Source: Oculina patagonica (Eukaryota). Taken from it: 64,000 bases of DNA. This document shows positions 19,679 to 61,039 of this stretch, piece by piece (within the stretch, counting starts at the first letter, position 1; every line of letters starts with the position of its first letter). The stretch spans positions 34,038,001 to 34,102,000 of the forward strand of contig NC_135759.1 in the NCBI RefSeq assembly GCF_052425735.1. The letters are read 5' to 3'. A program made the translations under genes and the position numbers. Below the pieces are notes generated by a model. The model was given only the letters and a program-made list of their open reading frames with translations, searched no databases and was not told the DNA's origin.

Positions 19679-19970
19679 CGCTTCCAAACGAACCAAGGCA
19701 GCGATTGAAGAAAATCGCTCGGATTAAGCCGCCGCTTTGAATAAAATTAAAGCTTCAGCTCCCAGCTAGCTATTAAGCGAAGATCGTGCGGGAATCAACG
19801 TCTGAGACACAGTACTTACTCTCGGTGCCTATATCATGGTGACCTTTGCTGATATTGGCGCTAAGTCAAAGGCCTAACTTACCAAGAGACACGCTTCAAA
19901 CTAATACAGGTCTTAAAATAGAAATGGACGCCGAACAATGTGTTTGCCTGCACGCATTATGTTAATCCGC

Positions 19971-30703: not shown

Positions 30704-30726
30704 GGTGACTCAACTTGTTGGATACA

Positions 30727-33700
30727 ATGGGAAGGTATTGGACTGTTGCTGTGGAGCTGATTGCATTTTTAACCTTCTTTGCAACAACTCTGCTGGAGAT
30801 CATCACTCAAAAGCACATCTACAACAATTTATCTAAGGATCACGCAAATACATCAGAGAATGTTGATTGTTGCAACTCCACTGCCGACATTGGGATAAAG
30901 ATGCAGAGTTCAGCAGATACAGAATACTGGCTGCTTTATATAAACTTGGCATCACTTTTGATGGCCATACCGTCAACAGTTCTTCTTGGGATCTGGAGTG
31001 AAACCGAGGGGCGCAAAGAGGTGCTTGTTGTCTCCTTGTTAGGTACAGTGCTGCGTGTGGCTTTGTTTATCATCGTCACACACTTTAAGGAGCCATTCCA
31101 CTTTTTCATTATTGCAAGTCTGGTGACAAGTACTTTGGGTTATAACACCAGCTTTATGGCAGCATGCATGGCCTTTATTGCTGATATTACTAGTAGCAGA
31201 CAAAGAACGTTGCGAATTGTTTTCTTAGACTGTGCCAAAGGGATTGGAATCGGCTTAGCTTATTTTATTAGTGGTTTCTATTTGGAGTGTAACTGGTTCC
31301 AGTATTTTCTCTGGGTTGTTCTTGCTCTCGGCATTTTTAACATTATCTATGTTATCTGCTTCTTAGAAAAGACGTCACTTGGCTATGATTCAACTCCAAT
31401 TTGTAGCTGCAATTATTTTGTTGGCATGTGCAGAGTTTTCAGTTTTGATCCAGGAAATGGTAGAAGATGGCGCTTACTGACTTTTGTTGCTACGTTTTTC
31501 ATTGGTGTGTTAGTTATTACTGGAACAAACAATTTGCTTATTTTGTATGCTCAAACATCACTTTCTTTTACTCTGGTTTTGACTGGCACTACTTATCAGG
31601 GGCTCTTGCATTACGTTTTATTACTAGCTTGGCTGGTGTCAAGTTATTTCAGACCATTTTAAAAATGTCCAACAACTGGCTCATTGAAGCAGGTTTGCTG
31701 TCTTTTTTTGCTGGCCTCATTTTGGCAGCGTTCAGCAGGACAACTCGTTTGTTTTTTAATGGTAAGTGCTATGTGATGTTTAGTAGGCAAGGTTACATTT
31801 TACAAGTTGTTCGGGGTGCCACTGATCTTGTTATCCCTAGTCAGTTATAAGATTCAAGTAAGGTTTAATGGACTTGTTCAAACTTAAGTCATCTTTTAGG
31901 TCAGGGGACACACTAGGTGACAAGTTGCTGCAACATGTTGCAGGGACAGGTCGCTGCAACATGTTGCCTTGTGTGACATGGTGCATTTTTGCGACAATGT
32001 ATCTCCATTGCTGCGACTGACCGCAGCGACAAAATGAGGGAAAGCAGCATGGGCTTACCCCAAGCTGCCTTAAAGCTAACTGTAGGCAAACCAGAGTGCA
32101 ATTAAGGCTTAGACTGGAGTGCCATATAGGCTAACCAATGTATTATTTAGGCTAACCAAAATGGCTTGCACACCTCGCTACTTTGCACTTTGTAACATCT
32201 TGGTACTGGTCATGATAACCTCCCTGTCATTTTACTAAATTAAATAAGTCCTGTGTCTCTATAAGCCCACCCTCCCACCCCATCTCCTCCACAAATGTGC
32301 TTGAAATAAATAAGCCCTTCAGTTGTAACTAATGTTATTCCAAAATCCAGTTATTGGACCTTGTACTTATTGGGGTTAGGGTTTCATAATTTTTGTTACA
32401 TCCAGATTAAAAATTTGTAAGACATGATTAGTGTTTCCACAAGCGTTGATCACAGGGTTGAGTCATGAGTGTAAATTTATGTTTATTTTTTGTATTTTCA
32501 GTTCCAGCATTTCAGTTTTTAGGTGCCATGCCACTAGCAGTGATGAAGGGCAGTATGTCCAGGCTGGTAGAGCCACAGGAACAGGGTAATTTTATAGAGT
32601 GAAGTTTTTTGTAAGTTTTAATGTTAATTTACTGTTGAAAATCAATGATAACCACAGATCCAAATGTGCAAAGTAGGGGGGGGGGGGGGGGGTTAGGTGC
32701 ATTATTGATTTTTTCAGGTTTAAAATTGATGCCTGGAGTTTGAAAATTAACCCTTTCTTGCTCCAAAGAGATGTGGGGTGTGGTTCCTTCAGGTCCCTCC
32801 CCTTTACTGCTGCTGGTAATGTTCAGCTTTTAAACTGCTGTCAGTCATTGGCAGTTTTTGTTTTTTAAAAATATAAGTTTAATGTACTTTTTCCTTATAG
32901 CAAGTAAGTTAATTTTGAATTTTTCTAAACAACTTTTTTCCTAGGAACATTGTTTGCAGTTGTTTCGTGTATGGAAAGTCTGGCATCTTTTCTGGGAGTC
33001 TTCATTTTCAGACATCTTTTTCATGTCACAAGTGATGTGTTTCCCGGGTTATCCTTTGTGATAGGAGCTTTATTACTGATTGTTCCAGCCATTCTTGTTG
33101 GGTATGTAAAACTGCCATTAATGAAGGCATACTTTTGTCAATTATTAAAGCCCGTAGTCATGATGAAAATGGCTCTTTTGATTTTAAAAGTGCTGATCTG
33201 TTTAACAAACACCCCGTTTTCAGTATTAAAGATTTTTGTTAATTTTTATAAATTTTATAAGCGTGATTAAAAATTGGAAGTTGATTAGAGATTAATTTAT
33301 TGGTTTGTTGTCATTGATTGATTGATTAAATGTCAAATAAACAGAAATTTCCATTTTTATTTTTATTTTTTGCCCATGTGTTTTTTAAGAGCCAAATAAA
33401 CATATCCCGAAGTTTCAAAGTAATCAGACATTGCATTGGAGAGATATTGCAAGTTGAAAAATGCTTTTTTAGTCCTTCATAGTCGTAGACTGCTCGGAAA
33501 AATTGCCGGAAATAAAAACTTGACATAATAATGGTGTTTTTGAAGACGACCGCAGACCGATTCCGCAGACCACACCTTAGAATTTAAATAAATGTGTTTG
33601 GTGACATTTCAAGCAGTTATTTTGTTCTGTTTGGCTGTTTTTCAGTTGATTGTTTGTTGGTTGTTGTTCAGAGACATAGATAAAATAGCTGAAGCGCAAA

Positions 33701-37415: not shown

Positions 37416-38846
37416 CTACCGTTCGTATTTTCCTCTGCGGGCTTCATGATGCTTGGCAGCATGTGTTAGTTTCTGAGGTTCTGTTTGTGGCCGTTCGATT
37501 GGCTGAAGCCGAAGCTTTGGAAAGTACGAAAATGTGAAAGATCTCGAGATAGAATTTGCAAGAACAGCCGAGTGGTAACTTTCCCAGAGCACTAGGTTAC
37601 GTTCGCGCTTTTTCTTTGCTTCTTCGACTCTCCTTTGCCTATCTACAGCTTCCTTCTCTTTCCGCTCAGCTTCAAGTTTCCTAATCTCCTCTAGCCGTTT
37701 TCTCTTTTCTTCTTGTCTCTGTTGCAATTTCTCAGCGTTTTTCAGACTTTTGATATTTCGCCGCTCTTCTTCCAGTTGGATGTCGAACTCTTTTTCCTTT
37801 TCTTCAGTGAAGGTCAGGGCGCGTTCAACATCCGTAGCTTGCTCATGTAAATTCCAGTGTGTCAACTCTGTTATTAAATGCTGCGCTTGAATTTTCTCGA
37901 TGTCTAAACATTCTTGCCTTTTACGCTGCTTTAGAAGATTGTTAGCTTTTGGACAGCCGTGCGCGCGTTTTCCTATCCAAATATCCTTTACCTTTGTGGA
38001 ATTTTCAAGAGAAGTGTCACTTTTCTTTGAGTTTGTCCAAGCGGCTGCGTTGTTTGTCTTCACTCTTTCAGTTTGCTTTTTACTGACAGCTTTTCTGCGT
38101 CCTGAGCTAATTTCATTCCTGTTTCTTTTTGCGCGCGTTTCTCGTAAAACCTTTCTTCCTTTCTTCACTATTTCTCGGAAATTGTTTCTCAAAGCTCTTT
38201 GCTTTTCTTTGATGTCTCGCTCGGTTTCTCGACGCTGATCAAATTTTTCACTAGAATTTATATTTTCTGTGCCATTTTCGGCAATCATGACAGAATTTTC
38301 CCTTAACATGGCTCGACCTGAAATTGATTCCTCGGCGGTATTTGCTTCACATCGAACATGATCATAAAAATTTGTATTAGGAGTTTCATCTGATATAAAC
38401 TTAGACTGAAATAGTAGTGTGGATAAACCATCTACTGTATCATTTCTATTGTCCCAAGTTGTGGTTTCGGATTTAAAACAGTCTTCATTTCTCTGACAAA
38501 TCTCTGCTGATTCGACAATTTTTTCAACAGGTCGTTTCACGCGACAGAACTCACTGTCAGTATAGTTCACAGCACTAGTGCCAGATGTCGAAGTTTCAGT
38601 TTCAGTATCGGATTCAAATGATGGAAGCGACAATTCTCTCGTGAAATTAGTGTCGCTCGGTTTTATCCCCTCTAGCTTTACTGGAAACGTTGGAGAAGTG
38701 AGTGACTCGTTACAGTTGAAGTATACGCTGTTATTTTCCACTTGTGCTCCAGGGCAGGTCAAGCTCTCGGTGTCTCCGTCATAAGATTCCGTAAGCGCTG
38801 AAAGTTTGCGGCTTACCAGTGTTGAAGAAGTTGACGGCCTGGACAT
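37416..38846 (-). CDS. Uncharacterised intronless charged-helix protein, SYF-tail paralog 1 (476 aa)
   Basis: Long open frame from ATG 38846; disordered S/T-rich N-half; E/K/R helix; ANSISRSFTFSYFPKL near the C-terminus. Confidence 0.82.
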   Translation of the reverse strand: MSRPSTSSTLVSRKLSALTESYDGDTESLTCPGAQVENNSVYFNCNESLTSPTFPVKLEGIKPSDTNFTRELSLPSFESDTETETSTSGTSAVNYTDSEFCRVKRPVEKIVESAEICQRNEDCFKSETTTWDNRNDTVDGLSTLLFQSKFISDETPNTNFYDHVRCEANTAEESISGRAMLRENSVMIAENGTENINSSEKFDQRRETERDIKEKQRALRNNFREIVKKGRKVLRETRAKRNRNEISSGRRKAVSKKQTERVKTNNAAAWTNSKKSDTSLENSTKVKDIWIGKRAHGCPKANNLLKQRKRQECLDIEKIQAQHLITELTHWNLHEQATDVERALTFTEEKEKEFDIQLEEERRNIKSLKNAEKLQQRQEEKRKRLEEIRKLEAERKEKEAVDRQRRVEEAKKKRERNLVLWESYHSAVLANSISRSFTFSYFPKLRLQPIERPQTEPQKLTHAAKHHEARRGKYER

Positions 38847-40637
38847 ATTTACTGACACTTTATGGGAAGAGTTAAACGCTGCAAGTTAGTCTCCAACTGA
38901 CGTTGTTTTTATACTGAAGACTTCTTTGGATTCTTTGTAGCCACAGACACTATAAGCAACAGCAAAACAACAAAGTTCCTCAGCATCTGAACAGTTTTAG
39001 TTCTAGTATCTCCGGCAAAAGCACCAGGTTCCTTCCTCAATTCAAAACAACAGGGAATACTTGCTTCTTTCTTCATTCAGCTAAGATATATGGGAGGATT
39101 TTCTTCTCGCGCCGAAGGGCGCACAAGAACCATTAAGGAAGAACATGCGGATTTTACACTTCCCTTCACCTGTCCGACCGAGATTTCAAGGTAAACACTG
39201 GAGTTCCACAACAACACGTCTTCTTCAAGCACCAATTTTTGAAAACATTTGGAAGGCTATTTAGCACAACAGAACGTCGATTTTTCAGCTGGGCTGTTTT
39301 ACTGTGATCATCCGTAACACTTCAGTGTGTAACATCAGATATAGATGTGTTTATCAACGCGATAAGAAAAACATGCGGACCTCTGTGGTGTATCGATGTT
39401 AATTTTGGTTTCCCGTTGCTTTGTTTGCGAGTTGCAAGACGTGCTCAGACGACATAACACCGAAGCTCAGCTGAAAGCTGTTCATATTTGATGAGCAAAG
39501 TTAGAAAAGAAAAATGACAAAGAACTGTTACCGTTTCCTAACTCATTATAATTATACTTTTTAGAAACGCCTAAATTTTTTGTGGCCACTGCTGTGAAAA
39601 TGGTGATAATTAAGATTTGCGTTGTTAGTCGAGCTGCGTCATTTGTTCGGAATCACTTGACATATTGTGATTTTGAAGACAATATTTTAACAGTGTATTA
39701 TTTAGAAGCATGTCTCGTCTTTAGTGTTTGAAATAAAAAACACGCATTTAAAATTTGTAACTCTGTGTATTATTGTAGATTGTATTGCATTATTGTATTA
39801 TTGCATGCAGCCCAGTGCTTGATTTTGTATCCATGCTCAGAAAGAACGAAACAAACAGCTTTCTTTTGAACCAAACAACAAAACTTGTACGTAATGCGCT
39901 CTTTAATTTATTAATGATGTTGAAAACACAAAGCGAGTAAACGATATATTATTTTATCTGTAACCTTCGGCCCAGATAAAAGATAATGACATATAATTAT
40001 TATTGGATCGGCACTAATCACCACTTAACCACAAAAGCAGCAAAGAAACGGGCTAAATAGATATAGAGAGTAAAGAATGTTTAATTGGTCACCTTCGGGA
40101 AGTAATAAGTTCGAAGCACTTATCAAACACAAAAGCATGAAGAATGGTTTTCTTCTCGAAAGGAAATCAGACAGCTAAAAACCAGACAGCTTCTAAGTAG
40201 GGTTTTTTGTATGATTTTTGATTTTATTGTAAATAGATTGTTTTTTTGTAAGAATTGTTTTAATTTTGGTTATAGTTTTATCTTTTGATTTGAGTAGGTC
40301 CACATCAGCTTTGTTGGAGATCTTTACAAAAATCCTGACTATATTTTGGTTGTTTCGTCGTTAAAGCTAACCAAAAAACGGTTTTGAATTTTTACGTGCG
40401 AAAAATGTCTCAATGAAATAAGGCCCGAGTAAAAATAAAAGTAACAAAATAAATTAAAGGACATGCGATGTTTAGCACCGCAGACATACTGGTAGCTAGC
40501 GCAGAGCCACCTTAACTTTCATGTGACCCAGACTCCTCTCGACCAACACTTGTTGCTATAGAATCTACACTCGTTCGAGCTTCGGGGAAGAATACATGAA
40601 TCGAAGGAAGGTTTCTTCCCAGTAATTCGCTTCCAAC

Positions 40638-41072
40638 ATGAATCAGATGGAACATAACGTCAAGATTAAAGACTACAAACGTTATGAAGCTCCAGGACCG
40701 TTTGTACGAACCGGCTACAGGCTAAACTATCCGCAAAACTACCCAAACGCGCAAGAGACGCGGCGGATGGAAGAACGATTCCAGACAATTCAGTGGCCGC
40801 GAAACAAAACCCTTGTTGGGCTCACGGATCAAGGAGATAGAATGAGGTTTACAAGAGACCAGCAGATAAGCGTTCTTACAAACCAAAGCGAAATTCTGAC
40901 CGATGTACAACATCATAGAAAAGTGCTTCTTGACACTGTCAAACGGAACGTTCACGTTGCTAGGGACGAGTTTGCACGTGAAGTTTACACTGGAAGACCC
41001 GGAGTTCGCGATATGCTGCGAGGAACTCAACCGCTTTATAAAGTCATTAACAATGGAACATTGTATGGCTGA
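40638..41072 (+). CDS. Uncharacterised 144-aa single-exon protein
   Basis: AACATG context; GC-richer coding-like composition within AT-rich flanks; AATAAA downstream (~41377, ~41412). No recognisable domain. Confidence 0.65.
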   Translation: MNQMEHNVKIKDYKRYEAPGPFVRTGYRLNYPQNYPNAQETRRMEERFQTIQWPRNKTLVGLTDQGDRMRFTRDQQISVLTNQSEILTDVQHHRKVLLDTVKRNVHVARDEFAREVYTGRPGVRDMLRGTQPLYKVINNGTLYG

Positions 41073-41588
41073 TGATTTGTCGACTTCAAGGATTAGATCC
41101 AGTGGTATTTTGTAGTTTAATTTTACATTCAGATAGCTAGACGTTTTGTTTACATTATGTTGATTAATATGTTATGTGTAAATGTAGTGAGAGCTAGTCT
41201 GCAAATTAGTCGAGTTTATGTTTTTCTTAAAATTGTTAACACTTGAAAGAACATCGAATGCTTGAGCTTTTAGACGTAAATAGTTGTATAAATATAAAAA
41301 GTGTGGTTCACCTTAAATGCAAAGAATGCTTTTACAGTGTTCAAACTTTAATATATTCAGAATTGAAAAGTTTATAATAAATTGTTAAATTTTAGAATTT
41401 TCTTTTGGGGCAATAAAACTTTAAAAGAAAATTTGTCGTCTACGATAACTTTTAGGACTTTTAGCTATAAAAATTTATTACCTATTAATTGCGTAACATG
41501 CCGAAGTTTCAGAAGCAGTATCCAAAGCTTTATAATGGGTGCTCGCTGGTGATGATTATTTATGCATGAGTTTGACTTTCATTTCTAA

Positions 41589-41778
41589 GGGGTGGTGAAT
41601 GGTCCTTCAAAAAGGCAAGTCTCGCAGAGTTTTAGCCAAATTTCAGGGCTCTCTTTGTCTTAAATTTTTCTTTGTTGCCTTCTTGGAGTCTCAATTTCTT
41701 TTGCAAGGCTAAAAAGGTCTTGGACTCGCAGAAAAGATATCAGTCTCGTAAAGTCTTGCAATAACCATTCGACACCCC
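41589..41778. mobile_element. MITE family, copy 2
   Basis: Colinear with 35348-35555. Confidence 0.7.
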
Positions 41779-43765
41779 TACTCTAGTACCAGCCTGTGAA
41801 GCTACATGGCAGTAAATGAGGAATAACTGTTTCTGGCTTTCCCCGCTTTCATTCTGTTAGAGCTCTAACTTCTATAGAGTTCAGGTTTGTCTGTGGATCT
41901 ACCTTTTGGGAATCGGACTGCTCAGTCATCAACAAAATATTCATAAACTGAACACTACCAAGTAGAGATCTTGTGTGCATGATATCGAGGAATTGCCCAT
42001 GAGATTTTACCATATAAATATAGTACAAGAACAATCGTCAGCACTTACTCTAGGCTATGCACATTATAACTGTCGTGCAGGTTTATTTCCCGATTCCTTC
42101 TAATAGCTGAATTATTGCTTTTATTGGTGTGACCTGGTGTGGGTCATAATAGTTGCTTAATTAGGGGGTAAACAATTATTTATTTTGAAATCAAGAGGTA
42201 ATAATTATTATTATTAAACCAGCTGGTTTTAATTTATATAAAGCAAAACTTGAGTGCTGGTAGACAATGTGTCTCTGATTAAATCAATTGTAGACACTGT
42301 CCTGGGATGGGGGGACATTTGGGTGGGGGTGCTCCGCTGGGATCTATGAACCCTTACCACGTCACTGCCCCAGAAAAGCTTAAATTTGTTAGCACCCCAT
42401 CTCATACTAGAGAGTTAAATTGTATACCCGTCTCAGACTCGAAGCGAACGGGATGTTTTCATTTTAAGATTTTCTTTATTGCAATACTACAGCATCCACT
42501 ATATATTTTTGATTACATTTCAAAACAACCTGAAGCAGAAAGTTATAAATTTGACATAATTTTTACTCATTTAGTGATCCCATCTCAGATTAAGGTGTTT
42601 TGGCCACTTTGGCTGTTCAAATCTCCCTCCCTCCCTGAAGGAGGTACTCCCTTAGATAAACAATATAGCAGTGTCAGATCTAGGGAAGGGCCCCCCACCT
42701 TATTTTCAGGCCAAACTTAGGCCCAAACGGTCGAGAAAAACTAATTTTGAGAGTGGGCCTCCCCCTTATAAATTATCAAGGTCTGGATGATCGGGGCTCT
42801 CACTTAGCCTAAGGTCTGGATCCGGCACCGTATAGGTATGTGTGAATCAAACTTCCATGTACATAATTTATGTGTTGGAAATCTTTTTTTCTTTTCTTTT
42901 CTTTTTTTCTTTTCTTTTCTTTTTTTCTTTTCTTTGCCGCGCAGGCGAAGAAATGCAACACGAGTCGATAAACGTTTCATTAATCTTTATTGAGATATTT
43001 AGAGCGAAATGTAGTTTAGATATTTAATTTCCAGCGCTTTATTTCAGTAACCCTTATACATTTCAAAATTTCTTTTGTTCGTCTCATGTCCACAACAATA
43101 ATTAACCACGAACACATAGGGTGGTCTGCCTGTGCTCTAGCTGCCAAGGAGCATACAGCTTTGTCCAGCTGCTGGTTCGAGCTGGTGGATAAAACTCTAT
43201 CGATTCGGTTCAGCAAGTTTTGGTTATACAAATGGACGCTTCATCTACTGGCGGATTTCATTGATGAATGAAGGTTATCCGTTGGGAAACAACTTGAGGC
43301 TTGGGATTAGCGCGCCTTCGCTGAAGTGCGTCAGCGGCGCGGCAGAACCAAAATTTCAAGATGGCTGCTCTCTCCTGTCTCTGCAGCTCACCTGGATGCA
43401 AAGGAAAACAAATGCAAATGAGGCTTATCATGCATACAGAGAGAAACACATCTTGTGAACAGGGCCTTGGAAACAGGTAAGGATGATGCTTAAGTACATT
43501 TCCCCAACATTAACCTATTCCTTTAATAAAGTCCTAATCAAGGCAACTGTGTCGTCTTGGGTTGTCTTGCGTCTTTGTTCAGCTTCGTTTGGCCAGGAAT
43601 TGCATGTACTTGCATTTAATACTTGTGATGTCTTGAGTACTTTCACCAAGACCATCTCACGCAATTTTTTTAAAAATTTTTAACCGGTCCTGGACTGTAG
43701 CGCGTGTGCTAGCCAGCATTTACCAAAATTGCGTGGAAAGACTGTTTGACAACTTGCGCGCACTA

Positions 43766-43853
43766 CATTCTCGACCCCAGAGCTATTGTCTTTTTCACGT
43801 GACTGACGGCGACAAACCACGCGCAAAAGAGAAGAGCTCTGGGGTCGAGAATG
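43766..43853. repeat. Short palindromic MITE
   Basis: CATTCTCGACCCCAGAGCT / AGCTCTGGGGTCGAGAATG. Confidence 0.7.
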
Positions 43854-43878
43854 GCGCGCAATAGTGTAGTGTATTTAA

Positions 43879-44173
43879 TGCACCTATCAATGTTAAGCCC
43901 GAGGGGGGGGGGGGGGGGGGGTCGGGCTAACCACGGGCATTTGATCGTGAGGTAGGTCCCCAGGGTAGGGATTTTGATCGTACGTGATGGCCCCAGGGTA
44001 GGGATTTTGGTCATTTATAGAAGGTTTGAAGGACATCTGACCACTTTTCATGGGGATTTTGACAAATTATTTTGTCCCGGGGGTGGGGAATTTGACATTT
44101 TTTTATAGAAAATGTCAAAATCCCCACCCCTTGCCCGACCCCCCCCCCCCCTTCGGGCTTAACATTGATAGGT
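43879..44173. mobile_element. PIF/Harbinger-type MITE, right end clipped
   Basis: TAA|TGCACCTATCAATGTTAAGCCC ... GGGCTTAACATTGATAGGT; same TIR family as 29200-29699. Confidence 0.75.
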
Positions 44174-45582
44174 AGCCTGCGAGCAAAGCGAGCCGATAAG
44201 GGAATGGGGGAAGAATAAAAACTTTCTTTTCGCCCCATCCTCGACCGGACAGCCTGTTCACAGCTAGGCTGGTGTAATTTATACGCTTGTTTTAGCTCGC
44301 AAAACACGTTTAATTGCGCATAAGGAAACAATAAAAAAACATTGTACTAGTATAAAGTAATGGACGAGAAAAACAGAGTGGGGCAACAAATTGTACAACC
44401 CTCGTCAAAAGTGTTGACACGATTGTCAAATTTCTCTCCTCTCTCGTTCCCGTCTCAGTGTTCAGCTCCCCATCCTTATCCACGAAGGGTTCGACATTGA
44501 AAGGAGGTAGAGCTATAAAATGTTTGCATGTCGCATTGATAAAGTTTAAGCGTAAAGTGTCCGCATTTCTATCGTCTTTCGTTTAGCGTTCAAACAACTG
44601 TTGTCTACCAGGCTTGGAGGGAGAGTTAATGCGTCAGTTTGAGAAAATTGAAATTTATCCTGAAAAAACTTGTGATTAATTATTTCAGCAAAGTGTGAGG
44701 CTATCAAGAGTTCAAACTGCCTGCTCCCTCTCTTCACGAGAAATTATCGTGTGAACAGCTCAAAGAAATCATAATTTGATTTGCTTTTAGTCAAGTGTTT
44801 GTGTTCTGTTAGATTAGCATTTCAATCAACGTAAGTTGAAATCTCAACTATAGGTAACGTTTTCTTTGAAGAAAAGTACAGTATCTATAAAAAGCTATCT
44901 TGTTATATGCCTCACAGAGGGCGCTGGGCCTATTTTAAGCTATCCCTGGCCATTTAAACACCAGAGATACAATTCAAAGATGTAAAAAAAAGATACGATC
45001 TCGGGTAATATATATTCAGATTTTTTTTTTCAGCTATCAGTCAAACGCTATTCACACCGTCCTTACATATAAACATACTGTAAAGGACGATCAAGCGCTT
45101 TGCCTTGAAAGGGAAAATTATTCTTCACATTTGGCTTAAAAATATCGTAAAATGGTATGTTTTTAAACTGTTACCCTTTATAGTGTCTACTAAAACAACT
45201 AGACGGCGAGCCCTTTAAGCTTTTTTTTTTTCGCTGTGCGCCTTGCTGATTACTCGCTCATAGAAAATTCAGTCTCATTGATGACTGTTATCAGAAGTTC
45301 ATAATCCTTTGCACATGTGACATCTAAATTTACAGTAGCTATATTATACTATTATACATTTTTTAAACTATCTTGATCTATTTTGCAGCATAAATAAAGC
45401 TATTGTTTATGTACATTATTTGATTTTGATTGGCTTCAATCAAACACTTAATTAACAACGATAGCGTTTACTTGTGGCGTCATACCTATAAATAATATCA
45501 TATTCAACCTCATCCAACAGTTGTAAACTATAGCATAAGTCTAAAGAGCAAAGCCTTGTTTCAGTAACAAGCAATTAGAAAA

Positions 45583-46737
45583 TTATTTCTTTAAGGACGG
45601 AAAATATGAGAAGCTAAATGGCCTTGAAACACTTGTGTTAAACATGGATTCTTTGTACATCTTTTTCATCGCCATATCCCTCGCCATCTTTTTTAACTTG
45701 GTCATTTCTCGTTCTCTTCGTTCTCTTTCCTGTCTCTCCTTCTCAAGCCTTTCCCTTTCTTCCCTTTCTCGTTCTTTGCGCTCCATCTCGGCCAAACATT
45801 CCTTCCGAACTTTCTGTATTTCGCTTTCTACAAGCTGTGCGGCTCGTCTTTTCGCTTTGACTTGATCTTCATGTAGTTGTGCACGGAATTTGTTCTCTGA
45901 TTCTTCCTTTCCTCTGAGAGCGTGCGTCAAGTCAATGGCAGATTCTGTTAATCCTAACGAGTAAAGCTCTACAATAATCTTCTGCACTTCCTCAGCTCTT
46001 TCAAGCCTTTTCACCTCGTGTTGTAACAGGTTTGCCACCTTGGCCTTTCCGTTCACTGTGGTTAGCGCAGCAGCTAGACTGTGTTTCCTTCGTGCGCGAG
46101 CACGATCCAAGTCTGACTGAATCTTTCGGAGCGAAGCGAGTTCTTCAGAATGCGCCCTACTTTTGTCGTACTCGCTGTTCTTTCCTTTCCCTTCCTTTTT
46201 CCGTTGTGCTCGCTCTTGTATAATCATCGCTTGCTGCATCTCCGCTCGTTCTTCTAACCTATCAATGGAAACTTTCTCAGCTTCGATGCGGGAAGCGATG
46301 AGTTGCGATCTTGCTTCGTCGATTACAGATTTAAACTTTCTGCGTGTGTCATTCTTTTTCGAGGCGGCCTCGAGTCGTATTCTTCTGAGTTCTTTCTTTA
46401 ACACTTCTTTTGCTCTTTGGCGAATTTCTTTTTCCGAAGTTATGGAAAGCTGTATATTACTTTCCTCTTTGTCGCCTTGTTTACGTTCATTTTCGCTACT
46501 CTCTTCCTCGTTCTCGTTCCCATCTTCTTCTTCGTCTTCTTCTTGAAGCGCCATATCCTCTAAGTCACTGTCTATATCAGGACTCAGTGAACTGGTGCTT
46601 GTTATGAGAGAAAACGTTTCTGATCCAGTGAGACTTCTCCTCTTTGTCCCTTCGATTTTCGGTAACACAAGGCGTGCATTGTTGTTAAAACCTGCGGCCG
46701 CGTCTTTTTTAAGTTCCACTTTGTCTTTACGTTCCAT
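45583..46737 (-). CDS. Uncharacterised intronless charged-helix protein, SYF-tail paralog 2 (384 aa)
   Basis: AAACATGG start; acidic patch; long E/K/R helices; ends NTSVSRPFSFSYFPSLKK*. Confidence 0.87.
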   Translation of the reverse strand: MERKDKVELKKDAAAGFNNNARLVLPKIEGTKRRSLTGSETFSLITSTSSLSPDIDSDLEDMALQEEDEEEDGNENEEESSENERKQGDKEESNIQLSITSEKEIRQRAKEVLKKELRRIRLEAASKKNDTRRKFKSVIDEARSQLIASRIEAEKVSIDRLEERAEMQQAMIIQERAQRKKEGKGKNSEYDKSRAHSEELASLRKIQSDLDRARARRKHSLAAALTTVNGKAKVANLLQHEVKRLERAEEVQKIIVELYSLGLTESAIDLTHALRGKEESENKFRAQLHEDQVKAKRRAAQLVESEIQKVRKECLAEMERKEREREERERLEKERQERERREREMTKLKKMARDMAMKKMYKESMFNTSVSRPFSFSYFPSLKK

Positions 46738-47749
46738 GTTTACGGTATAAAACCGCGTTAAAGTTGCGCGAACTTTACTTTCAATTCGTGTCTCAACGCA
46801 AACAGCGCCAGCGCATCAAGGAAATGTTTGAAAAATGTTTTTGTTCCTCTTTTTTCGTCGAACCAGGTTTTTATCTGTCGTGTATCTCAACAGAACTACT
46901 GGCCCAAATATTATTCTTCCTTTCAGTTATCGTCTTTTAATCTTGTCATTTATCTCCTCTCTTAGTCTCACGATTAAACATCAACATTTAACCAAAATTG
47001 ATGAGATTAGCTTGGCTTCAGCCAATAGCAAGCTTCATTTGTAAGGTGGTAACACGTCGAAGTGTTCGCTACTATAAAACTAAAAAAAGAAGGGCATCAA
47101 ATATGATAACTGGAATAATAGCCGTAGATACTAGAGGCTGTTGAAAACGATAATGAATGTCTAGTATTTTATTTTTTTAACGGTCTTTCGTAGTTTGGAT
47201 AAATAAGAGGTGATCACAGTTAATAATTATTGTTGTAAATAGATGTTGGGGTACATTCTTAGCATGATGTCTCGAGCGCTTTTTGGATGCTCCCCTTCCC
47301 TCTCCACTCTTTGCTTCTACTTAGTTGTGATCTCTTTTGCGGAGTAATTTCTTATGTACTTTCTTGTGTAGAGTAAACTGGCATAAGTAAAGTTTGTTAG
47401 TTTGTAATCTCACTACAAATAATGTAATCATGATGATATTAATTGAGTCTGTAATGAGAGGCTACATCTAGATATGCTTATCTCCGCATGGACAATAATT
47501 GGGCTAATCTTGAAGAGTCTGTCGCTGGGAGCCACACTAGCGTGTTGTTTATGTAAAATGTTCGAGCGGTACATCAGTTACTTATTGATGAAGCTATCGA
47601 AAGCAAGGATCCAAACCGTCTATCTTGAGATAAGATGGAATTCTTGAGTGATAAAACTATGTACAATCATAGTTAGTAGAGGTACAATGAAAACACGCCG
47701 TCTGACTGGCTTTCTTGTTACTGTAAACATGTTTATACCGGATCAGGTC

Positions 47750-48168
47750 CCGGGGGGGGGGGGGGGTATTCAAAAATATTTTATACGGGGAGGCTCCGCC
47801 CCAAGTTCTAACCCCTTACCCTTTTATATACCATTTTTGACAGAAATTGTACCCCTTTCATATACCTTTAACTGGAAAAAGGTACCCCTTTCATATACCT
47901 AAGAGACATGGCGTGGACTTAAAATAGGACGTTTTCTTGTCATTTTTATGTAGCGCTTAATAAATTAAAATAATACAGCCATAATTGCGTCTGTTCGAAA
48001 TATTTTTATTAAAGGCCCTTTTGAATAGCCAAATGACAGATTTCCATACCCTTTCATATACTTAAACTCGTGAAATCCCTACCCTTTTATATACCTGAAG
48101 CATGAAAAAGGTACCTCTTTCGGGCGGAGCCTCCCCGTATAGGGCATTATAGGGAGTACCTCCCCCGG
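47750..48168. mobile_element. Non-autonomous DNA element with clear TSD
   Basis: CCGGGGG... / ...CCCCCGG ends; GATCAGGTC duplicated at 47741-47749 and 48169-48177 (9 bp, or 7 bp if the ends extend by one). Related fragments occur near 21700-21810 and 42300-42660. Confidence 0.8.
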
Positions 48169-48680
48169 GATCAGGTCACGCCAAATTTATTGCTTTAATT
48201 TTATGATTGCGTGTGTGAGAACTCAAGCCTGTTTCTCAGTCAGGTTCACTGGACACACTTTTTGAGGTCACTCTCAAACTAAATCTTGTGTCTGTAGCAG
48301 GCTGAGTATTACGAATATGCGTGTTCTATCGCTATTTTGATTCTTGGCTAACCAGACAATCATAACAATTTAATTGTTAGAGAACTAATGAGAATTTCAA
48401 TTTTATTAAAATTTTTGAACCTGTCACAGTCTTAAATGGCAATTATTTTAACCACAACAGATAACGACGATATTATCCTCGGAAGTCTGCACGGAATGGT
48501 ATCAGTTTGTAACCATAGCAAGCAGGTAGTTACAACATAACAATTGCCCTTCCAGGTGTTGATTTAATTGTTACCAATGTGTTGTGGTTAAGAAAACTCT
48601 GCAGGTTACAAACCTGCAGATCATTAGTGTGTTTGTTTATGTTGTAGAAGACAGCCACGAGAACTCGTGTTGAAACTGAA

Positions 48681-49874
48681 CTATTTGCGTATTGGAGGAG
48701 AAAAATAGGTGAATGTATGCGATTTTGAGATCCTTGAATTTAACAGAGTTTGATCAAAACTTCGCCTCAATGCCTGATTGTGAGCTTTACGCGCCAAAGC
48801 GGCCATCACTCGCTCGCGCCTTTCCCTCTCCTCCCTGGCTTTTCTTTCTTTCTCTAGCCTCTCCATCTCGGCGATTCTTTTCTTACGCAACTTTTGTACC
48901 TCTTCTTCCTTTTTCTTTAAAGCCTCGATCCGCGCTTTACTCCTCTCTTCCTTCAATTGGATGCGTAATGAAAAGTCTGCCTGCTCTTTTGACTGTATTG
49001 AGAGGTGCAGGGAGTTAGCTTGCTCGCTTAACCCAAGACGGTTCAAGTCTTGAATCAGGTTCTGAATTTCATCGATTCTCTCAAGTTTGCGTATCTCCGT
49101 TTGCATAAGTTGCTTTATTTTTCCTTTCTTCTTTAAATTAAGTAATGAGACAAGTCCGGACGAAGTCTTTCGTCTTGCCCGAGCTCTGTCTAAATCTGAT
49201 TGGATTTTTCGCAAACTAGCCATTTCTTCCATTTGTTCTCGGACCCATTTACTGCCAGCGCCAGAGTTGTGTTTAATATCTATCTTCTGGTCTTTTTCGT
49301 TTAATATTTGCCACCTTCTTAAAGATCTTTTCTTCATTATTTCGTTCTGTTTTTCTTCTGCTTTCTCTTCTAATTTATTTACGGCCTCTTTCTCCCCGTT
49401 AACCCGAGCTTCTACCAGCATTTCACGCGCGTTGTCTATTACTTTCGTAAACTTCTTTTTTATCTTCAACTCTTTAGCCTTGGCATCTTGCCAAATCTTT
49501 TTGAAATCTTCCCTGAACTTTTCTTGAACTCGATGTTCGATCTCTTGCATATCTTTCTCAGTGAGCATGTACTCTTCCGCTTTTGTACCAGAGGAAAGTT
49601 TTTCATCATTCCGAAATTCATCGAAATCTTCCAATGAGAATTCGGAGGTTGAAATGCTTTTTTCGTCCTCGTGGCTATAGCTGTTGGAAACAGGGGACAA
49701 GCTTTCTGAGTCGCCATAAGCAGAATCTATACTTGGCAGGTTAAAGCTGCTGGTTTTCCGTGAATTTGCTTGACAAATTTCCTTGCCTGGAGTTTTCCCA
49801 TCTTCAAATACATTTCTTCTCTCATGTGCTTCATAAATGTCCGCCAGTAGCGGTCGATTGCGCGTAAACGACAT
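48681..49874 (-). CDS. Uncharacterised intronless charged-helix protein, SYF-tail paralog 3 (397 aa)
   Basis: Alignable by eye to paralog 2 over the C-terminal two thirds; ends NSRISKSHTFTYFSPPIRK*; AATAAA on the - strand at ~48402. Confidence 0.87.
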   Translation of the reverse strand: MSFTRNRPLLADIYEAHERRNVFEDGKTPGKEICQANSRKTSSFNLPSIDSAYGDSESLSPVSNSYSHEDEKSISTSEFSLEDFDEFRNDEKLSSGTKAEEYMLTEKDMQEIEHRVQEKFREDFKKIWQDAKAKELKIKKKFTKVIDNAREMLVEARVNGEKEAVNKLEEKAEEKQNEIMKKRSLRRWQILNEKDQKIDIKHNSGAGSKWVREQMEEMASLRKIQSDLDRARARRKTSSGLVSLLNLKKKGKIKQLMQTEIRKLERIDEIQNLIQDLNRLGLSEQANSLHLSIQSKEQADFSLRIQLKEERSKARIEALKKKEEEVQKLRKKRIAEMERLEKERKAREERERRERVMAALARKAHNQALRRSFDQTLLNSRISKSHTFTYFSPPIRK

Positions 49875-51659
49875 CCAGCCCTTTCGCTTCGTAGAAGTAG
49901 TAATAATTGATCGTCAATTTTCTTTATACAGCTTTACAGACGTGGGATGAAAATAATTTTCGGTACCTAATTAGATGTGATAATTATTTTATACGTTATG
50001 GAGATCTTGCACGACATGAGATTATTCAGCTATAGCCGCAAGAATCACGAAACCCAGTTGATTTTCCGAGATAAGAAATAATTGTTTTAGATAAACCATA
50101 CTCGGTCTTTGTGTTATTCCAGACGTTCATTTTAAATTTTGCACTGGAAGTTGTTTTTCCGCTTTTGGTACTATTTGTTGATCTCTTATCTTCCTCAAAA
50201 TTATTATGATGCATCTTTCAAGTGTGGCCAGAAACTCCTAAATCCGTTGTCATGTGTGTTACAAAAAAGTATGTTATGTTTACAACAACCTTCCTCTCTC
50301 AGTGGCTGCTACTGAAATGTCTTGTCAATATTTTTTTCAGCCGTGTTTATTTAAGTGCACAAAGAACCTCATATCTTAATAATAAAGCGGCGGACGATTC
50401 GCTTGCTTGAAGTACTTATATAGAGACTAAATGAAATACAATAAAATCAATCAATATACGGAAATTTATTAAGACAGTTTGAATAAGAGAAATGGCGCAG
50501 AACTGTCTCACTTAGATTTATTATATGAATCCTCCTGGCTTTGTTGCCTTAGTCGAGAAATTGATTTAATATCGATTTAGTGATTTTTTTCTATAGTCGG
50601 CATTAGAGCAGGTGATAGCAAGAGGGAAACCCACAATAACATACACAAAGCGTTTAATGATTGCTAATGGAAGCACCAAAGTATGTTATTTTTATTCAAG
50701 GGGCGTAATGTTCGAATTTTTATGAAACAGAATTCAAGTTTAAGGAGAATTAAAAAGGAAAAAATAAAAAAACACTCCATCAAATTGACTACCATTGCAC
50801 AAGAGAACTTCGCATACTGATAGCATTCTATTTTAATGTCCATCTATCAATTATTAACTAGAAAATTCGAATTCTTCCTTCTTTTTTTCAAATCCACAAA
50901 ACCATTCTTTCCTCCTCCCTCGTAAACATCTCTAAAAATCATTAAACAATTCTTAAAATTACGTAGAACCTTCCATTGAAAATCTGTGACGGCATTAGTA
51001 GATTGCATGAAACCTCACGATGAAGAAAGGTGTTAAAACAGAACAAACACAGCATTCAGTTATTCCGCCTATTATATCAAAGGGTCAAGCCGCCTTGCAG
51101 TGGTTAAACTGACTTGAATATCTAGTTGAGATATTTTTTTCTCCCCTTCTAAACTTCGTACAGAAATGTTTGGCAGGCCGATTTTTCAGTAAGATACAAT
51201 GTAAGCAGTGTGAGAAAATGTACGCATGCTTGTGTTTTCATGCAATTTCTGATGAACGTTTTTATACAAAGAACTATGAAAAAATGACTGAATAACCCTT
51301 TTCAGCTAAAAACAAAAAACTAAAAATATCATGCCTGCTGACTGCTGTTTTTGTCTGTAAGAGTGACTTTGAAAAATAACGAATAAAAGAAATAATATTT
51401 TGAGTTATTCTGTGCCTCTTTCCTTGACTCGCCTTTATGTGTTAGTGGGTCTGAAAAGTTCTTTAGTAGTGTCTTTTTGAGATCAGATTTCAATGACTTT
51501 GTGCTTTGTGAAGGAGCTTTTAAAGAAAGAAGTAAATAATTTCGTGTTTCCTTTTTTGCTGAGCTTGCTGAGTTAACCTGCTGTAACCATTCAGAGCAAA
51601 GATGGTTTTTATCAGGAAATTGAAAAACAGGCTAGCACCATCGAGATTTGGGTTCATTT

Positions 51660-51810
51660 CACTTTGCACGCGCTTGCCATTGGTTCCACCATGCAGTCAC
51701 ATGTTTTCCCGCGCTTGCTCCTGTTGCACGTTTTCCCGCGCCGCTTTTCATTAGCTGCATGTTTTCCCGCGCTTTCCATCAGTTACATGTTTTCCCGCGC
51801 TTTTCATCAG
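51660..51810. repeat. ~30-bp minisatellite (CATGTTTTCCCGCGCTT core)
   Basis: Four to five degenerate tandem copies. Confidence 0.7.
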
Positions 51811-51974
51811 TTGTATGTGTTCAGCATGTTATCGGTCACCGGTTGAATGTTTGCGGTTGCATGTTTTACTACGAGTTCTAATTGGTTAACTGCGCTGTTT
51901 GCGGGAGTATTGATTGGCTATGTGTTTCGTGTTATAAGAGTGTTGTTGGTTTAGTTTTGGTTTTTCTTATCATT

Positions 51975-53436
51975 TCATCTTGGTTGATTTATTTTTTTCT
52001 TCCTGGAATGTGAAGAGCAATTCTTTCTCTTGTTGCTTGATGACGCACATGTACATGCGGAGTTTTGGCGGGAAACCCGCTCGGTGGAATCTGAACTACT
52101 ACTATCGCTGTCCTCACTGCTTGACTGCTCATCAGAAGACGAGGATCTGGTGTCGTGTATGAGTAGAGGGAAATATGAGAATTTAAAAGCCCGTGATATC
52201 TTTGAGGATAAGATGGACTTTTGCTTTTCATTCCAAAGCGCAATGTTCTTCTCTCGTCGTTTTTGAGCTTCAGCTCGTCTCTTTTCTCTTTCACGCATTC
52301 TCGTTTCTCTCATTTCCTCTTCCAACCTTTCTAGCTCCTCCATTTTTAAAAAGAAAGCTTCTCGTCTGCTCTTCTCGAAGTTTTTCGCTTCCATTCTTTT
52401 TTTCTCTTCCCTTTCTTCTTGCAGTTCTCTCTTTATTGCCTTGTTCAACTCTTTTTCTGTCATCAATTTGGATTCCAAAAGATCGCTCAGGCTTTCGGCT
52501 TCATTCACTTTGTTGAGCTTGTAGAGTTGTCGTATAGTTTTGTTCACAGTTTTGGTCAGATTGTCCGGCTTCGAAGAACCATGCTTGCGCTCTTTAAGAA
52601 TGCTCTTTGATGGTAATCCACCTTCCTTTACAATGCGATTTAATTTTCCATCTGGCGACTTGCCGTCCTTCTCTCTAGTTGTTTGCTCAGTAATTTCTAG
52701 CATAGAAACTACATGTTTTTCTTTAGTTTCTGATCTTAATCTACCATCCTCTTCTTTTTCTCTCTGATCCTGTTGTTTTTGATAAGTTTGTCCAGGCGAT
52801 TCACTGTTTGGTTTTCTCAATCTTCTACCTTTCTTCTGAGCTGAAGCTTTCACTTTCGAAACTTTTTGTCGAGTCTTTCCCGGAATGCGAACCTTTCACG
52901 CTCCTTTCTCTTTGGCTTCCTGATGCAGTCGCCCTTTCCTGTTTTCCATCCATTTCTGCCTGTGAAATAGTTTCCTTCGCTGCCACTAAGTGCTTTTGTA
53001 CCTCGTCCTCAAGCACACGAATACGATCTTGTAGAAGCTTTGAAACTTTAAATGGTCTTTCGGGAAAGCCCGCGTCTTTTGCTGTGCTTGTTTTCTCAGT
53101 TTGTTCCAAATCCGAAAACGACACCAAATATTTCGACTTTTGTACATCAGGCAGCTCTAAACCGTCTTCACTTTTTCTCATTTCCTTGCCAGCCACAGAA
53201 AACGAGAAACTTTTACTTCGTACCTGTTGCATGTGTTTGTCAGGCAGACCGGGACAAAATGCTGACTTTATACGAGGCAGAGCTGATTCAATGCTATTCG
53301 GTCTTGTGTACATCGTATTCCCACTGCTGATTTCGCTCTCTGGTGAGATCATGTTAGCAACAGGAATCTCTATGGACCGAGTTTTCGATGAAGAACGAAG
53401 CAGATTTTCCATTGCAGAAATGTTAGCTTGTGACAT
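51975..53436 (-). CDS. Uncharacterised intronless charged-helix protein, SYF-tail paralog 4; split by a +1 frameshift at ~52828-52896
   Basis: ORFs 53436-52825 and 52853-51975 overlap on the same strand. The first has SALPRIKS and the second SSKISRAFKFSYFPLL; together they give the paralog-1-like architecture. Confidence 0.72.
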
Positions 53437-54205
53437 AAAAGGCCTTCGGATTGATTGAATGAAATCTTTGCCGTATTATATGTCTTGGTTGAAAGGAAAA
53501 AGCAACGAAAAATTTTGTTTGAAGTATTGCAATCTGCTGAAGTTTAGAAATACAGAAATACTATACTTGTGTTGTCAATGTCTGTTTTCTAGTTACACCT
53601 TTTGAATTTACTCCGTTGTTAGCGAGTTTTTAAATTCATTAGCGCCTTCAATTTTCCTCTACAAATGCCTCTAATTGTCTCTGCTAAGGTGTAAATTGAA
53701 TTGTTATCACGTTCAAGACTCTATGCGAATAACAAAACAAGAACATTGTGTGGTCGTTTTCACATTTTAATTGCTTTCTGCTAGTTGTCAGCTTGCTTCG
53801 TGTTTTTAATTACGGTGTTAATAAAGTGTAATATTCCTGATTTAAAAAGCAGTAAAAGCGAAAGCGGTACAACATGTACAGGAGCTGCCTGTTACGTGTT
53901 CGAGGCTAGTAAGTGTTTTGCAAATAAGAGGCAATTTTTAAAACAAAAGACAGTATAGAAATAAGTGTTTTAGACTGACAATGGCTTTACAGAACGTTCA
54001 TGTTCTAATAAACATTTTGTTGGAAAATCTCTCAGGCATCTTTTGCAAAACAACAGGCCAGGGATTTTGAGTTTTAGTATTAGGATTATGATTTTGAGTT
54101 TTAGCCTCTATTTTTTGTTTATATTTCTACACAGTTCTTGAAGTTAAATGTCGTATTATAGTCATGACTTCGAGGAGATACTCACTGCATGGGTGAATGA
54201 CGATT

Positions 54206-59200: not shown

Positions 59201-61039
59201 GGTAGTCTTACTAATTTCCTCCACTTGAGTTTTAGTTTACTATCAACTAACAGTTCTTTTCCTTTTTTCCAGCGGACAGAGTCAAAGTCAAAGTTGCCAT
59301 CGGATTTGCCATCGCTTGCGCTGTGCTTCTAGTAGGAATATTCATATTGTTGTTATACAAGGTACTGTGGTTTCGATCTAAGAGCAATGCCGCAAGCAAG
59401 CCACCAGCTAAAAGCGTCGTACAAAAGCGCGCGCCAAGTGTGACGGAACAAGACTTCCAACGAACTCGTCAACAATGCCGGCATCACCCTCTGATGAGAT
59501 CCGATAGCTCAGCGTCAGAGATCGACATTGATCAATCATGGTTGAAAAACAATAATATGTTATCATCTGAATCGGACAGCAGCCAAGAGCCAAGTTTTAA
59601 CCTAGGTAAGCTCGAATTTAACATCCATTACGACACAGAAACTGAGTCTCTACGAGTGACGCTAGTGGCTGCGTATGATTTACCATCTATTCACAGCACG
59701 AGTTACGTGGAATTGTACCTGTTGCCAGACAGAGTGGAAAAACATCAGACGAAAATTCATTATTCTAACTGCAGTCCTGTTTACAACGAAGAATTCGAGT
59801 TTGATATTGGGTTTTCGGAGTTGGCTGAGCGTACTTTACAGTGCTGTGTGTTTAGTTATGATGGATTTTCTCGGCATCAATCCATTGGAGAAGTTTTTTA
59901 TTCGTTTGGCGAGGACGACCAGTTATCTGAGTATACAGGTGTATCACTGTGTAAAGACATCAAGAGAGATGTGTTTTTGCTAAAGGTGAGTTTGTTAATC
60001 AGCTAAATTCTTTATTTATCATTTATTTAAAACCATGCATGCAGATCTGAGGCCCTGCTAGGGTTTATCGGGATACGGGATATTTAGGTAAACAATTGTA
60101 GGGATACGGGATGTTTTGGGGAGATACAATCCACAGGAATTAACGGGATACGGGATATTTCGACCGAAAATTAACGGGATACGGGATACTACCCACCCCC
60201 CCCCCCCCCCTTATTGGGCCTTTTTTTTTTTTTTTTTTTTTGCGGGTTTAAAAAAAAAAAAAAATTTTTTTTTTTTTTTATATCTTTAAAAAAAAAAAAA
60301 CCAGGAAGGGAGGGGCCCCACCCCAAAATACCTTAAAAGCTCTATGAATCCTCCGGAGGGCTTATGACTTTTTGACCTTCTGAAGGGGGAAGTCTGTCTT
60401 GGGGGTATAGAGAGGGCTTGTTGGAGGCGGGGTGACTTATTACAAATCATATTTCAGTTGCTGAAGGTTTAAAAAAATGTTTTAGTGTTGTTTGGTAACT
60501 CATTTTCATATAATAGCAACAATAATAAGCAAATGGTGGATTGAATAACTTTAAATTAAAGCGTAAAGTTTTCTTGTTCATGAGTTGTTATGATTTGCCA
60601 TCTATCTAGGGAAGGGGAGGGGGCTTATTGATAAATTTTTCTATAATTTTTAATTTTTAACACTTTTATATTGCATATAATTGTATTGTCCCAGGACCCC
60701 TATTGATACCAGTCTCGTTGCTGAATGGGCCACCCTGGTAAAATAAAGTCCCTTACCTACTAGCTTTTACGGTACTGTTGCTGTACTCTAGCTTAGTAGC
60801 ACACATAGGTCTATTAGGTGACTGAACTCCCAATGTGTATCCCTTTCAGACGCAGGCTGAGATACTCTGTCTCATTCTTGCATTTCTTTTCCCGTCACTT
60901 GTGTTATTTTAGGAGGATAGTCCATCTCGTGTAGGAGAGGTATTGGTGTCTCTTTGCTACCTTCCCACCACCAACAGGCTGACATTTGTCGTCCTGAAAG
61001 CGAGGCTGTCTAAAAACACATTTCCTGATGACTTGCCAA
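56220..61039 (+). CDS. Synaptotagmin-like protein B (TM + C2A + start of C2B; last exon(s) not found in window), predicted Ca2+-independent
   Basis: Exons 56220-56310, 59273-59985 and 60913-61039 have consistent phases (1,0,1). TM VAIGFAIACAVLLVGIFILLLY; C2A LGKLEFNIHY...SPVYNEEFEF...FSYDGFSRHQSIGEV; C2B GEVLVSLCYLPTTNRLTFVVLKAR. Exon 1 is less certain than the others. Confidence 0.83.
60049..60221. mobile_element. MITE with GGGATACGGGATA internal repeats
   Basis: GAGGCCCTGCTAGGG ... CCCTTATTGGGCCT; four GGGATACGGGAT units. Confidence 0.6.
60640..60760 (+). mobile_element. LINE 3'-end fragment
   Basis: CCAGGACCCC...CAGT...CTGAATGGGCCACCCTGGTAAAATAAA resembles the 3' stem-loop at 25535-25590. 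Confidence 0.5.

Follow-up and report, generated by a model that had tools for sequence, protein, structure and literature searches.

The genomic stretch analysed here (the window) comprises 64,000 nucleotides of the coral Oculina patagonica (contig NC_135759.1, positions 34,038,001 to 34,102,000). It carries, on the minus strand between window positions 37416 and 53436, a cluster of four genes, g1 to g4, whose products are well supported as members of an old cnidarian family of long, highly charged helical proteins (Table 1). This region holds five listed open reading frames (ORFs), corresponding to g1, g2, g3 and two overlapping frames of g4. The original prediction, made from the letters of the window, had described four same-strand, single-exon ORFs. 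This description holds for the locus as such, whereas the g4 copy in the haplotype analysed here carries a frameshift. From an upstream GTG, the g1 ORF would span 37416-38858 and encode 480 amino acids (aa). The g1 protein continues past its tail with a basic extension of ~34 aa, and many corals, among them Porites lobata, have orthologues with lengths of 428-549 aa. The g2 allele on a second contig of the same assembly, the haplotig C1711, is identical to the RefSeq uncharacterized protein LOC144641240 of O. patagonica.

The relationship of the four proteins was examined by pairwise BLASTP with composition-based statistics. The strongest match was between g2 and g3, with an expectation value (E) of 1e-45 (38% identity over 297 aa), and the other pairs gave E-values of 3e-12 (g1-g4), 3e-11 (g1-g3), 5e-9 (g1-g2), 3e-6 (g2-g4) and 7e-3 (g3-g4). 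The similarity is therefore significant after compositional correction. The homology common to g1-g4 lies in the last ~150 residues (alignments A2, A3 and A5). The only nucleotide match was 82 bp at 72% between g2 and g3, in agreement with the predicted lack of evident DNA similarity. A profile of the C-terminal region was searched against 1.84 billion representative proteins and matched 70 clusters at E ≤ 1e-3, of which 45 were at E ≤ 1e-10. Only family members were returned, no unrelated E/K-rich proteins were recognised among these matches, and the family domain was at or near the C-terminus in every full-length match. The genes are under purifying selection. The ratio of nonsynonymous to synonymous substitution rates (dN/dS) was 0.08-0.21 for g2 and g3 against a 95%-identical relative. 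Compared with the other haplotype, g2 and the two g4 halves gave 0.08-0.25; no such ratio is given for g3 because it differs there at a single site. Together with orthologues in Scleractinia, Actiniaria and Scyphozoa, these values uphold the proposal of an old paralogous family kept by selection.

Table 1. Coordinates, in window numbering, of the four genes, their motifs, the g3 contigs and neighbouring features
Feature	Position	Strand	Remarks
g1	37416-38846	minus	476 aa from ATG; single ORF; g1-type subfamily
g1 C-terminal family domain	37503-37961	minus	helix, turn, ~100-residue helix, aromatic tail
g1 tail SRSFTFSYF	37521-37547	minus	
g1 'LPSF'	38616-38627	minus	look-alike of the N-terminal motif, from motif reading and comparison of g1 orthologues
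g2	45583-46737	minus	384 aa; single ORF; g2/g3-type
g2 tail SRPFSFSYF	45601-45627	minus	protein ends 5 residues beyond
g2 block ASLRKIQSDLDRARARRK	~46084-46200		18 aa
g2 LPKI motif	46654-46665	minus	
g3	48681-49874	minus	397 aa; single ORF; g2/g3-type
g3 tail SKSHTFTYF	48702-48728	minus	
g3 block ASLRKIQSDLDRARARRK	~49100-49220		18 aa
g3 LPSI motif	49728-49739	minus	
g3 contig, X1	48418-49834		one mismatch
g3 contigs, X2	48421-49634, 49741-49843, 49814-49931		gap at 49635-49740
g4	51975-53436	minus	g4-type; two frames in this haplotype, ORFs 52825-53436 (203 aa) and 51975-52853 (292 aa)
g4 tail SRAFKFSYF	52170-52196	minus	
g4 LPRI motif	53269-53280	minus	
Myb/SANT-like DNA-binding ORF	18581-19696	minus	PF13873, E 4e-19
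C2-domain exons	25820-26557 and 30715-31662	plus	
144-aa ORF	40638-41072	plus	between g1 and g2, opposite strand
MFS transporter exon	59323-60006	plus	

The family is clustered in other anthozoan genomes as well. In the 529-Mb O. patagonica genome, copies were found at this locus and its haplotig and nowhere else, and the order g4-g3-g2 is identical in the 95%-identical relative. In the sea anemone Actinia tenebrosa, a stretch of 12 kb contains four members: a g1-type gene of 742 aa and a g2/g3-type gene of 429 aa on the plus strand, and a g2/g3-type gene of 384 aa and a g4-type gene annotated as 562 aa on the minus strand. These orientations are unlike those of the coral cluster. At least three members are found together, within 16 kb, in another hexacoral-like genome. 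In a maximum-likelihood tree, the g2/g3 genes formed a clade with support of 100/97 and the g4 genes one with 97/92, and both clades included sequences from corals as well as anemones. Resolution was poorer for the g1-type group, and the jellyfish sequences fell into a clade of their own. Because coral and anemone genes occur in each clade and the genes are clustered in Actinia, the three subfamilies (g1-, g2/g3- and g4-type) and their clustering probably predate the coral-anemone split. The coding sequences are free of introns in coral, and the same holds for Actinia (2229 nt encoding 742 aa) and for a jellyfish-type gene (1902 nt encoding 633 aa).

Two short motifs mark the ends of these proteins. 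All of the tails and Leu-Pro motifs quoted in the original prediction are present, the latter at residues 78, 25, 46 and 53 of g1 to g4. Nearly all of ~130 coral orthologues have the tail, [ST][RK]x-aromatic-x-aromatic-[ST][YF][FY], and so do most of the distant representatives. Of 54 full-length family representatives, 35 have the N-terminal motif, hydrophobic-x-L-P-x-[ILV], compared to 18% of shuffled sequences. Within the g2/g3 subfamily the proline of this motif reaches a conservation of at least 90% (alignment A6), and g4-type representatives carry the motif as ...LPRIN... Among g1 orthologues the Leu-Pro is not kept and an acidic Ser/Thr block, [FI]ES[DE]TETE-TSTS, is conserved instead. 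The LPx[IF] motif that the original prediction listed for all four genes is thus a feature of the g2/g3 and g4 types and is not conserved among g1 orthologues. The g2 and g3 proteins also contain an identical 18-aa block, ASLRKIQSDLDRARARRK (alignment A6), at which BLASTN detected no DNA similarity between the two genes. This block is also conserved in the g2/g3-type genes of Actinia, and the Ser/Thr a few residues after it resembles a basophilic kinase site.

Some subfamilies carry further patterns. In g4-type proteins the tail is followed by an acidic Ser-rich run and then by a basic end in which the pattern C-x-C ... C is conserved (window 51975-52170; L014:21831-22178). This acidic and cysteine pattern is common to coral and Actinia, and the cysteine end may be a metal-binding or lipidation site. 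Jellyfish-type proteins (P0182, P0184, P0186-P0188, P0190, P0192 and P0197) have an N-terminal L-P-[SRK]-[VLI]-x-[EQ] followed by acidic residues. Those with Glu at position 6, such as LPSVFE, LPSLFE and LPRVSE, fit LxxIxE, which we take to be the docking consensus of PP2A-B56; the N-terminal motifs of the coral paralogues do not fit it.

The architecture of the proteins was modelled using AlphaFold2. With a 64-sequence alignment, the C-terminal domain of g1 was predicted with a pLDDT (predicted local distance difference test) of 93.5 as a helix at residues 4-35, a three-residue turn and a single helix at residues 39-140. The turn falls on the conserved W-N-L / L-G-L and the tail was modelled as coil (pLDDT ~63-68). 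In the full-length model of g2, residues 1-84, including LPKI, were almost entirely disordered and were followed by helices at 85-181, 189-225 and 264-370 and by a free tail. The rod is 51-59% charged, contains 19-25% strong hydrophobics and has no dominant heptad (3.5-residue) period. It resembles single-alpha-helix (SAH) and other charged-rod spacers in that one uninterrupted helix of ~100 residues is predicted with this charge and no clear heptad periodicity. In contrast to such spacers, it has a modest density of i to i+4 salt bridges and scattered conserved hydrophobics. An SAH-like rod is therefore plausible. Searches with Foldseek against the PDB and against Swiss-Prot AlphaFold models, and by shape in the ESM Atlas, returned only generic helical bundles, and an Atlas shape match to a TPH cluster was a single-helix overlap.

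Outside O. patagonica, named coral orthologues were found in Orbicella, Stylophora, Acropora, Desmophyllum and Porites. Distant members include proteins of A. tenebrosa (named 'trichohyalin-like') and of the jellyfish Sanderia malayensis, and the eukprot entry 'Seg2052.3', which is probably from Aurelia as judged from the naming style. A sturgeon protein, LOC131737653, was matched with an E-value of 1e-4 library-wide and scored 45.5 bits against a cnidarian-only profile. It carries L-K-L-P-S-I upstream. Its gene is multi-exon, encoding 241 aa over 4.7 kb (L016, Acipenser ruthenus OV754676.1:66440120-66464832), and is flanked by a MYRF-like gene and a CNOT2-like gene. When the sturgeon protein was used to seed a homologue search, it was the sole match, and no other vertebrate relative was found. 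Two further weak profile matches, to which no taxon was assigned, end in ISRPWT[FY]SYF. In the non-cnidarian sequences, recognisable similarity to the family is limited to the final ~60-80 residues. As far as these sequences indicate, the best explanation is that the family is ancient, metazoan overall and best developed in Cnidaria.

We compared the family with described ones using a local Pfam copy that includes DUF4670 (PF15709) and lacks the EPSTI1 model PF28372. When the window proteins, 20 distant representatives and all 64 domain sequences were scanned, every match was below threshold and compositional in nature. No described family in this copy matches, consistent with the earlier view of the family as undescribed. 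A profile search of the PDB gave nothing below an E-value of 0.38. The orthologues have been named in RefSeq as trichohyalin-like, calponin homology domain-containing protein DDB_G0272472-like and vicilin-like seed storage protein, and the likeness is one of E/R/K-rich composition only. No CH, TPH or cupin domain was reported by Pfam in any member scanned, and TPH (PF13868) was not among the Pfam families reported for the family. We therefore rejected the trichohyalin, calponin-homology and vicilin identities as compositional artefacts, the eponymous domains being undetected.

The frameshift in g4 was examined against the haplotig. Relative to C1711, g4 in the window has an 11-bp deletion between 52855 and 52854 (junction reading and alignment), which shifts the frame and results in a stop TAG at 52825-52827. 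On C1711, g4 is an uninterrupted ORF of 491 aa (L007:1324-2799), in the 95%-identical relative it encodes 490 aa, and the more distant g4-type proteins P0150, P0157 and P0160 are likewise uninterrupted (490-519 aa). Either the deletion represents a heterozygous null allele or it stems from an error in the assembly. The low dN/dS in both g4 halves suggests that the frameshift is recent or artefactual. Divergence between the haplotig (L003, L005 and L007) and window 45583-53436 was very uneven: g3 differs at 1 nt (synonymous divergence, dS, 0.004), g2 at 33 nt (dS 0.11), and the g4 halves have dS of 0.12-0.28. Gene conversion, mosaic assembly or deeply divergent haplotypes could account for this pattern.

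Transcription was assessed in sequencing runs that a tool has only guessed to be RNA, although they show the coverage expected of RNA. Unspliced g3 contigs, colinear with the genome and without joints, were present in two such RNA-like runs. Their extent, 48418-49931 on the minus strand, implies a 3' untranslated region of ~260 nt and a 5' untranslated region of at least 57 nt. In these two runs depth was zero at 48200-48399 and in the intergenic 50000-51599, and neither had a contig for g4 (52000-53599). Two poly-A runs had only stray reads on g4, and parts of g1 were represented in similar RNA-like runs. The g3 contigs come from runs of several studies, and these runs resemble routine coral RNA-seq. 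We read g3 as transcribed and unspliced, since the coverage pattern is what RNA gives, and g4 as silent or very low in these runs. The four genes had been proposed to be a co-regulated set, and the presence of a g3 contig and absence of a g4 contig in the same two runs speaks against this. Two nearby segments, 47800-48200 and 51600-51800, were covered hundreds to thousands of times in RNA-like runs, and the coverage there was rich in variants and joints. Dispersed repeats or fragments of transposons, either transcribed or abundant, are the probable source.

A promoter scan covered 600 bp upstream of each gene. No RFX X-box was found upstream of g1, g2, g3 or g4. The only X-box-like site in the window is a perfect palindrome, GTTGCTATGGTAAC, at 17565-17578, away from the four genes, and one such site per window is at chance level (49 of 100 shuffles). 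The scan for X-box, FOXJ1, cell cycle genes homology region (CHR), E2F, interferon-stimulated response element (ISRE), STAT, NF-kB and other sites gave nothing above background save MYB-like sites, with YAACNG slightly in excess upstream of g1 and g2.

Our preferred reading, to which we give a probability of about 45%, is that g1-g4 are functional members, one with a frameshifted allele, of an ancient and undescribed metazoan family of extended adaptors or spacers. Each protein is predicted to be elongated and almost wholly helical. It begins with a disordered N-terminal region bearing the short linear motif, followed by a conserved helix-turn-helix 'hinge', L-I-x-E-L-x-x-L-x-L-x-E-x-A. Next come the stiff charged helix, then a basic amphipathic end, K-R-x-x-x-N ... 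L, and finally the near-invariant, exposed aromatic peptide [ST]-[RK]-x-aromatic-x-aromatic-S-Y-F-(P). The aromatic tail would dock on one conserved partner, with its alternating aromatic side chains on one face of a beta-strand, and the N-terminal motif and subfamily-specific extensions would recruit something else at a distance of ~15 nm or more. For the partner, our first guess is microtubules or another acidic lattice of the cytoskeleton. The original prediction had also proposed adaptors that dock by the tail. This fits the AlphaFold2 models, with their rigid helix and unstructured aromatic tail, while the docking itself, like the adaptor role and any partner, is something we infer. Several other points weigh against the preferred reading. 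Transcription rests on runs typed as RNA by a tool's guess, even though their coverage fits, and g4 without a contig where g3 has one argues against simple co-regulation. The N-terminal motif of g1 differs from that of g2, g3 and g4, and the fold searches gave generic bundles only. The rod is only moderately SAH-like, with 0.07-0.12 E/D-to-K/R i+4 pairs per residue. Conserved hydrophobic residues are dispersed over its length, and it may instead form a coiled coil as part of an oligomer.

A further possibility, which we regard as doubtful, is that a wider superfamily with vertebrate EPSTI1 and/or KIAA2012 among its members has this family as its cnidarian branch, acting as those proteins do. 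It bears on classification and partner and is compatible with the adaptor reading. An ESM Atlas feature search with the g1 C-terminal domain gave EPSTI1 (PF28372) as all three best named clusters (0.81-0.83) and a KIAA2012/DUF4670 cluster at 0.75; scores below 0.9 are leads only, and the tool flags such family naming as probably wrong. The same search with full-length g2 was uninformative, and no connection with EPSTI1 emerged when the sturgeon protein was used. The vertebrate gene EPSTI1 is induced by interferon and encodes a small protein that is largely charged coiled coil, and its order of parts is similar, with an xAPNINR-like motif before the long coiled coil. The coral genes differ in having no standout ISRE, STAT or NF-kB sites upstream. 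Foldseek against Swiss-Prot AlphaFold models, a test to which long single helices are poorly suited, gave four matches with the C-terminal domain, all with E > 4, and neither EPSTI1 nor KIAA2012 among them. KIAA2012 also has a long E/R/K-rich helical region, whereas it is ~1150 aa long compared to 330-990 aa in the present family. The weak non-cnidarian matches end in ISRPWT[FY]SYF or KPWVFSFF, comparable to the ...ISRPW.YSYF that the original prediction gave as the putative KIAA2012 tail after a charged helix. The KIAA2012/DUF4670 link drawn there found no support from Pfam. DUF4670 (gathering score 27 bits) had no match at E ≤ 1 in the window proteins and 20 distant representatives. It was absent from the families at E ≤ 10 for member 1 and from the 25 most-matched families across 64 domain sequences. 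A six-frame search of the whole genome with it at E ≤ 10 was also negative, as it was in control genomes, which makes this a weak search. Among the profile matches at E ≤ 1e-3, most of which are unnamed, none was identifiable as EPSTI1 or KIAA2012. The position of the sturgeon homologue between MYRF-like and CNOT2-like genes also speaks against the superfamily, as human EPSTI1 and KIAA2012 presumably do not lie beside such neighbours. According to published work, the VCP/p97 segregase has EPSTI1 as a cofactor, which binds by its coiled coil; loss of residues 71-180 from this domain abolishes the binding (PMC11234217). KIAA2012 localises to motile cilia, with its function unknown (bioRxiv 10.1101/2025.03.18.643967). 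These reports, which favour the superfamily, give localisation and VCP-binding data only. We found no paper mentioning DUF4670 and no usable Oculina single-cell result.

The remaining explanations assign the genes to particular compartments or deny the family altogether. The original prediction suggested a ciliary or sperm-related role, and structural or accessory proteins of cilia or sperm flagella, such as co-regulated microtubule-bound rulers, would suit the layout. Aromatic anchors on long, charged helices are a typical trait of axonemal microtubule inner proteins, and intron-free tandem genes are common among testis-expressed genes. The possible resemblance to KIAA2012 points to cilia as well. 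We nevertheless consider such a role improbable: the upstream regions have no X-box, no PDB chain matches although the PDB contains many axoneme structures, and a family confined to cnidarians and a few weak matches is too narrow for a core ciliary part. The g3 contigs in routine-looking runs of several studies, from which g4 is absent, also count against it. We see even less reason to expect nuclear or RNA/chromatin-associated proteins with basic clusters as nuclear localisation signals and kinase-regulated R-R-x-S/T sites. The charge of the rod with its many K/R clusters and the kinase-like site near ASLRKIQSDLDRARARRK would fit, and two members weakly match ARGLU (E 3e-4) and two CAF1A_acidic (E 9e-3). 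These matches are compositional, since they are isolated and below gathering thresholds; the proteins are without a nucleic-acid-binding domain, and the invariant aromatic tail would be left unexplained. The frameshift in g4, and RefSeq names that show how easily composition misleads, could be taken to mean that there is no real family, only chance similarity of low-complexity charged ORFs or decaying pseudogenes. That explanation is already refuted by the composition-corrected E-values, the specific profile, the low dN/dS, the phylum-wide orthologues and the g3 contig in RNA-like runs.

Elsewhere in the window, the neighbouring features are a Myb/SANT-like ORF, two C2-domain exons and an MFS transporter exon (Table 1). 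The 144-aa ORF that lies between g1 and g2 had no match in Pfam or PDB searches.

In its present state, this work is a solid family description without a function. It defines a conserved cnidarian-wide family that has no local Pfam entry and carries misleading RefSeq names, and a microsyntenic cluster that has probably persisted since before the divergence of corals and anemones. The diagnostic C-terminal motif is easy to mutate and offers a clean handle for partner finding. If the link to EPSTI1 or KIAA2012 is real, the family would provide an evolutionary and structural framework for both of these poorly understood human proteins. A more specific and rather unlikely possibility is that the proteins form a pre-bilaterian 'two-motif ruler', in which the LPxI-type and SYF motifs are held apart by the charged helix. 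Only parts of this design would survive in vertebrates, in the sturgeon gene and perhaps in EPSTI1 and KIAA2012, and the three subfamilies would have stayed together as a single intron-free cluster for more than half a billion years because they act jointly on one partner. If this were true, the cnidarian genes would show what the ancestral functional module of two enigmatic human proteins looked like.

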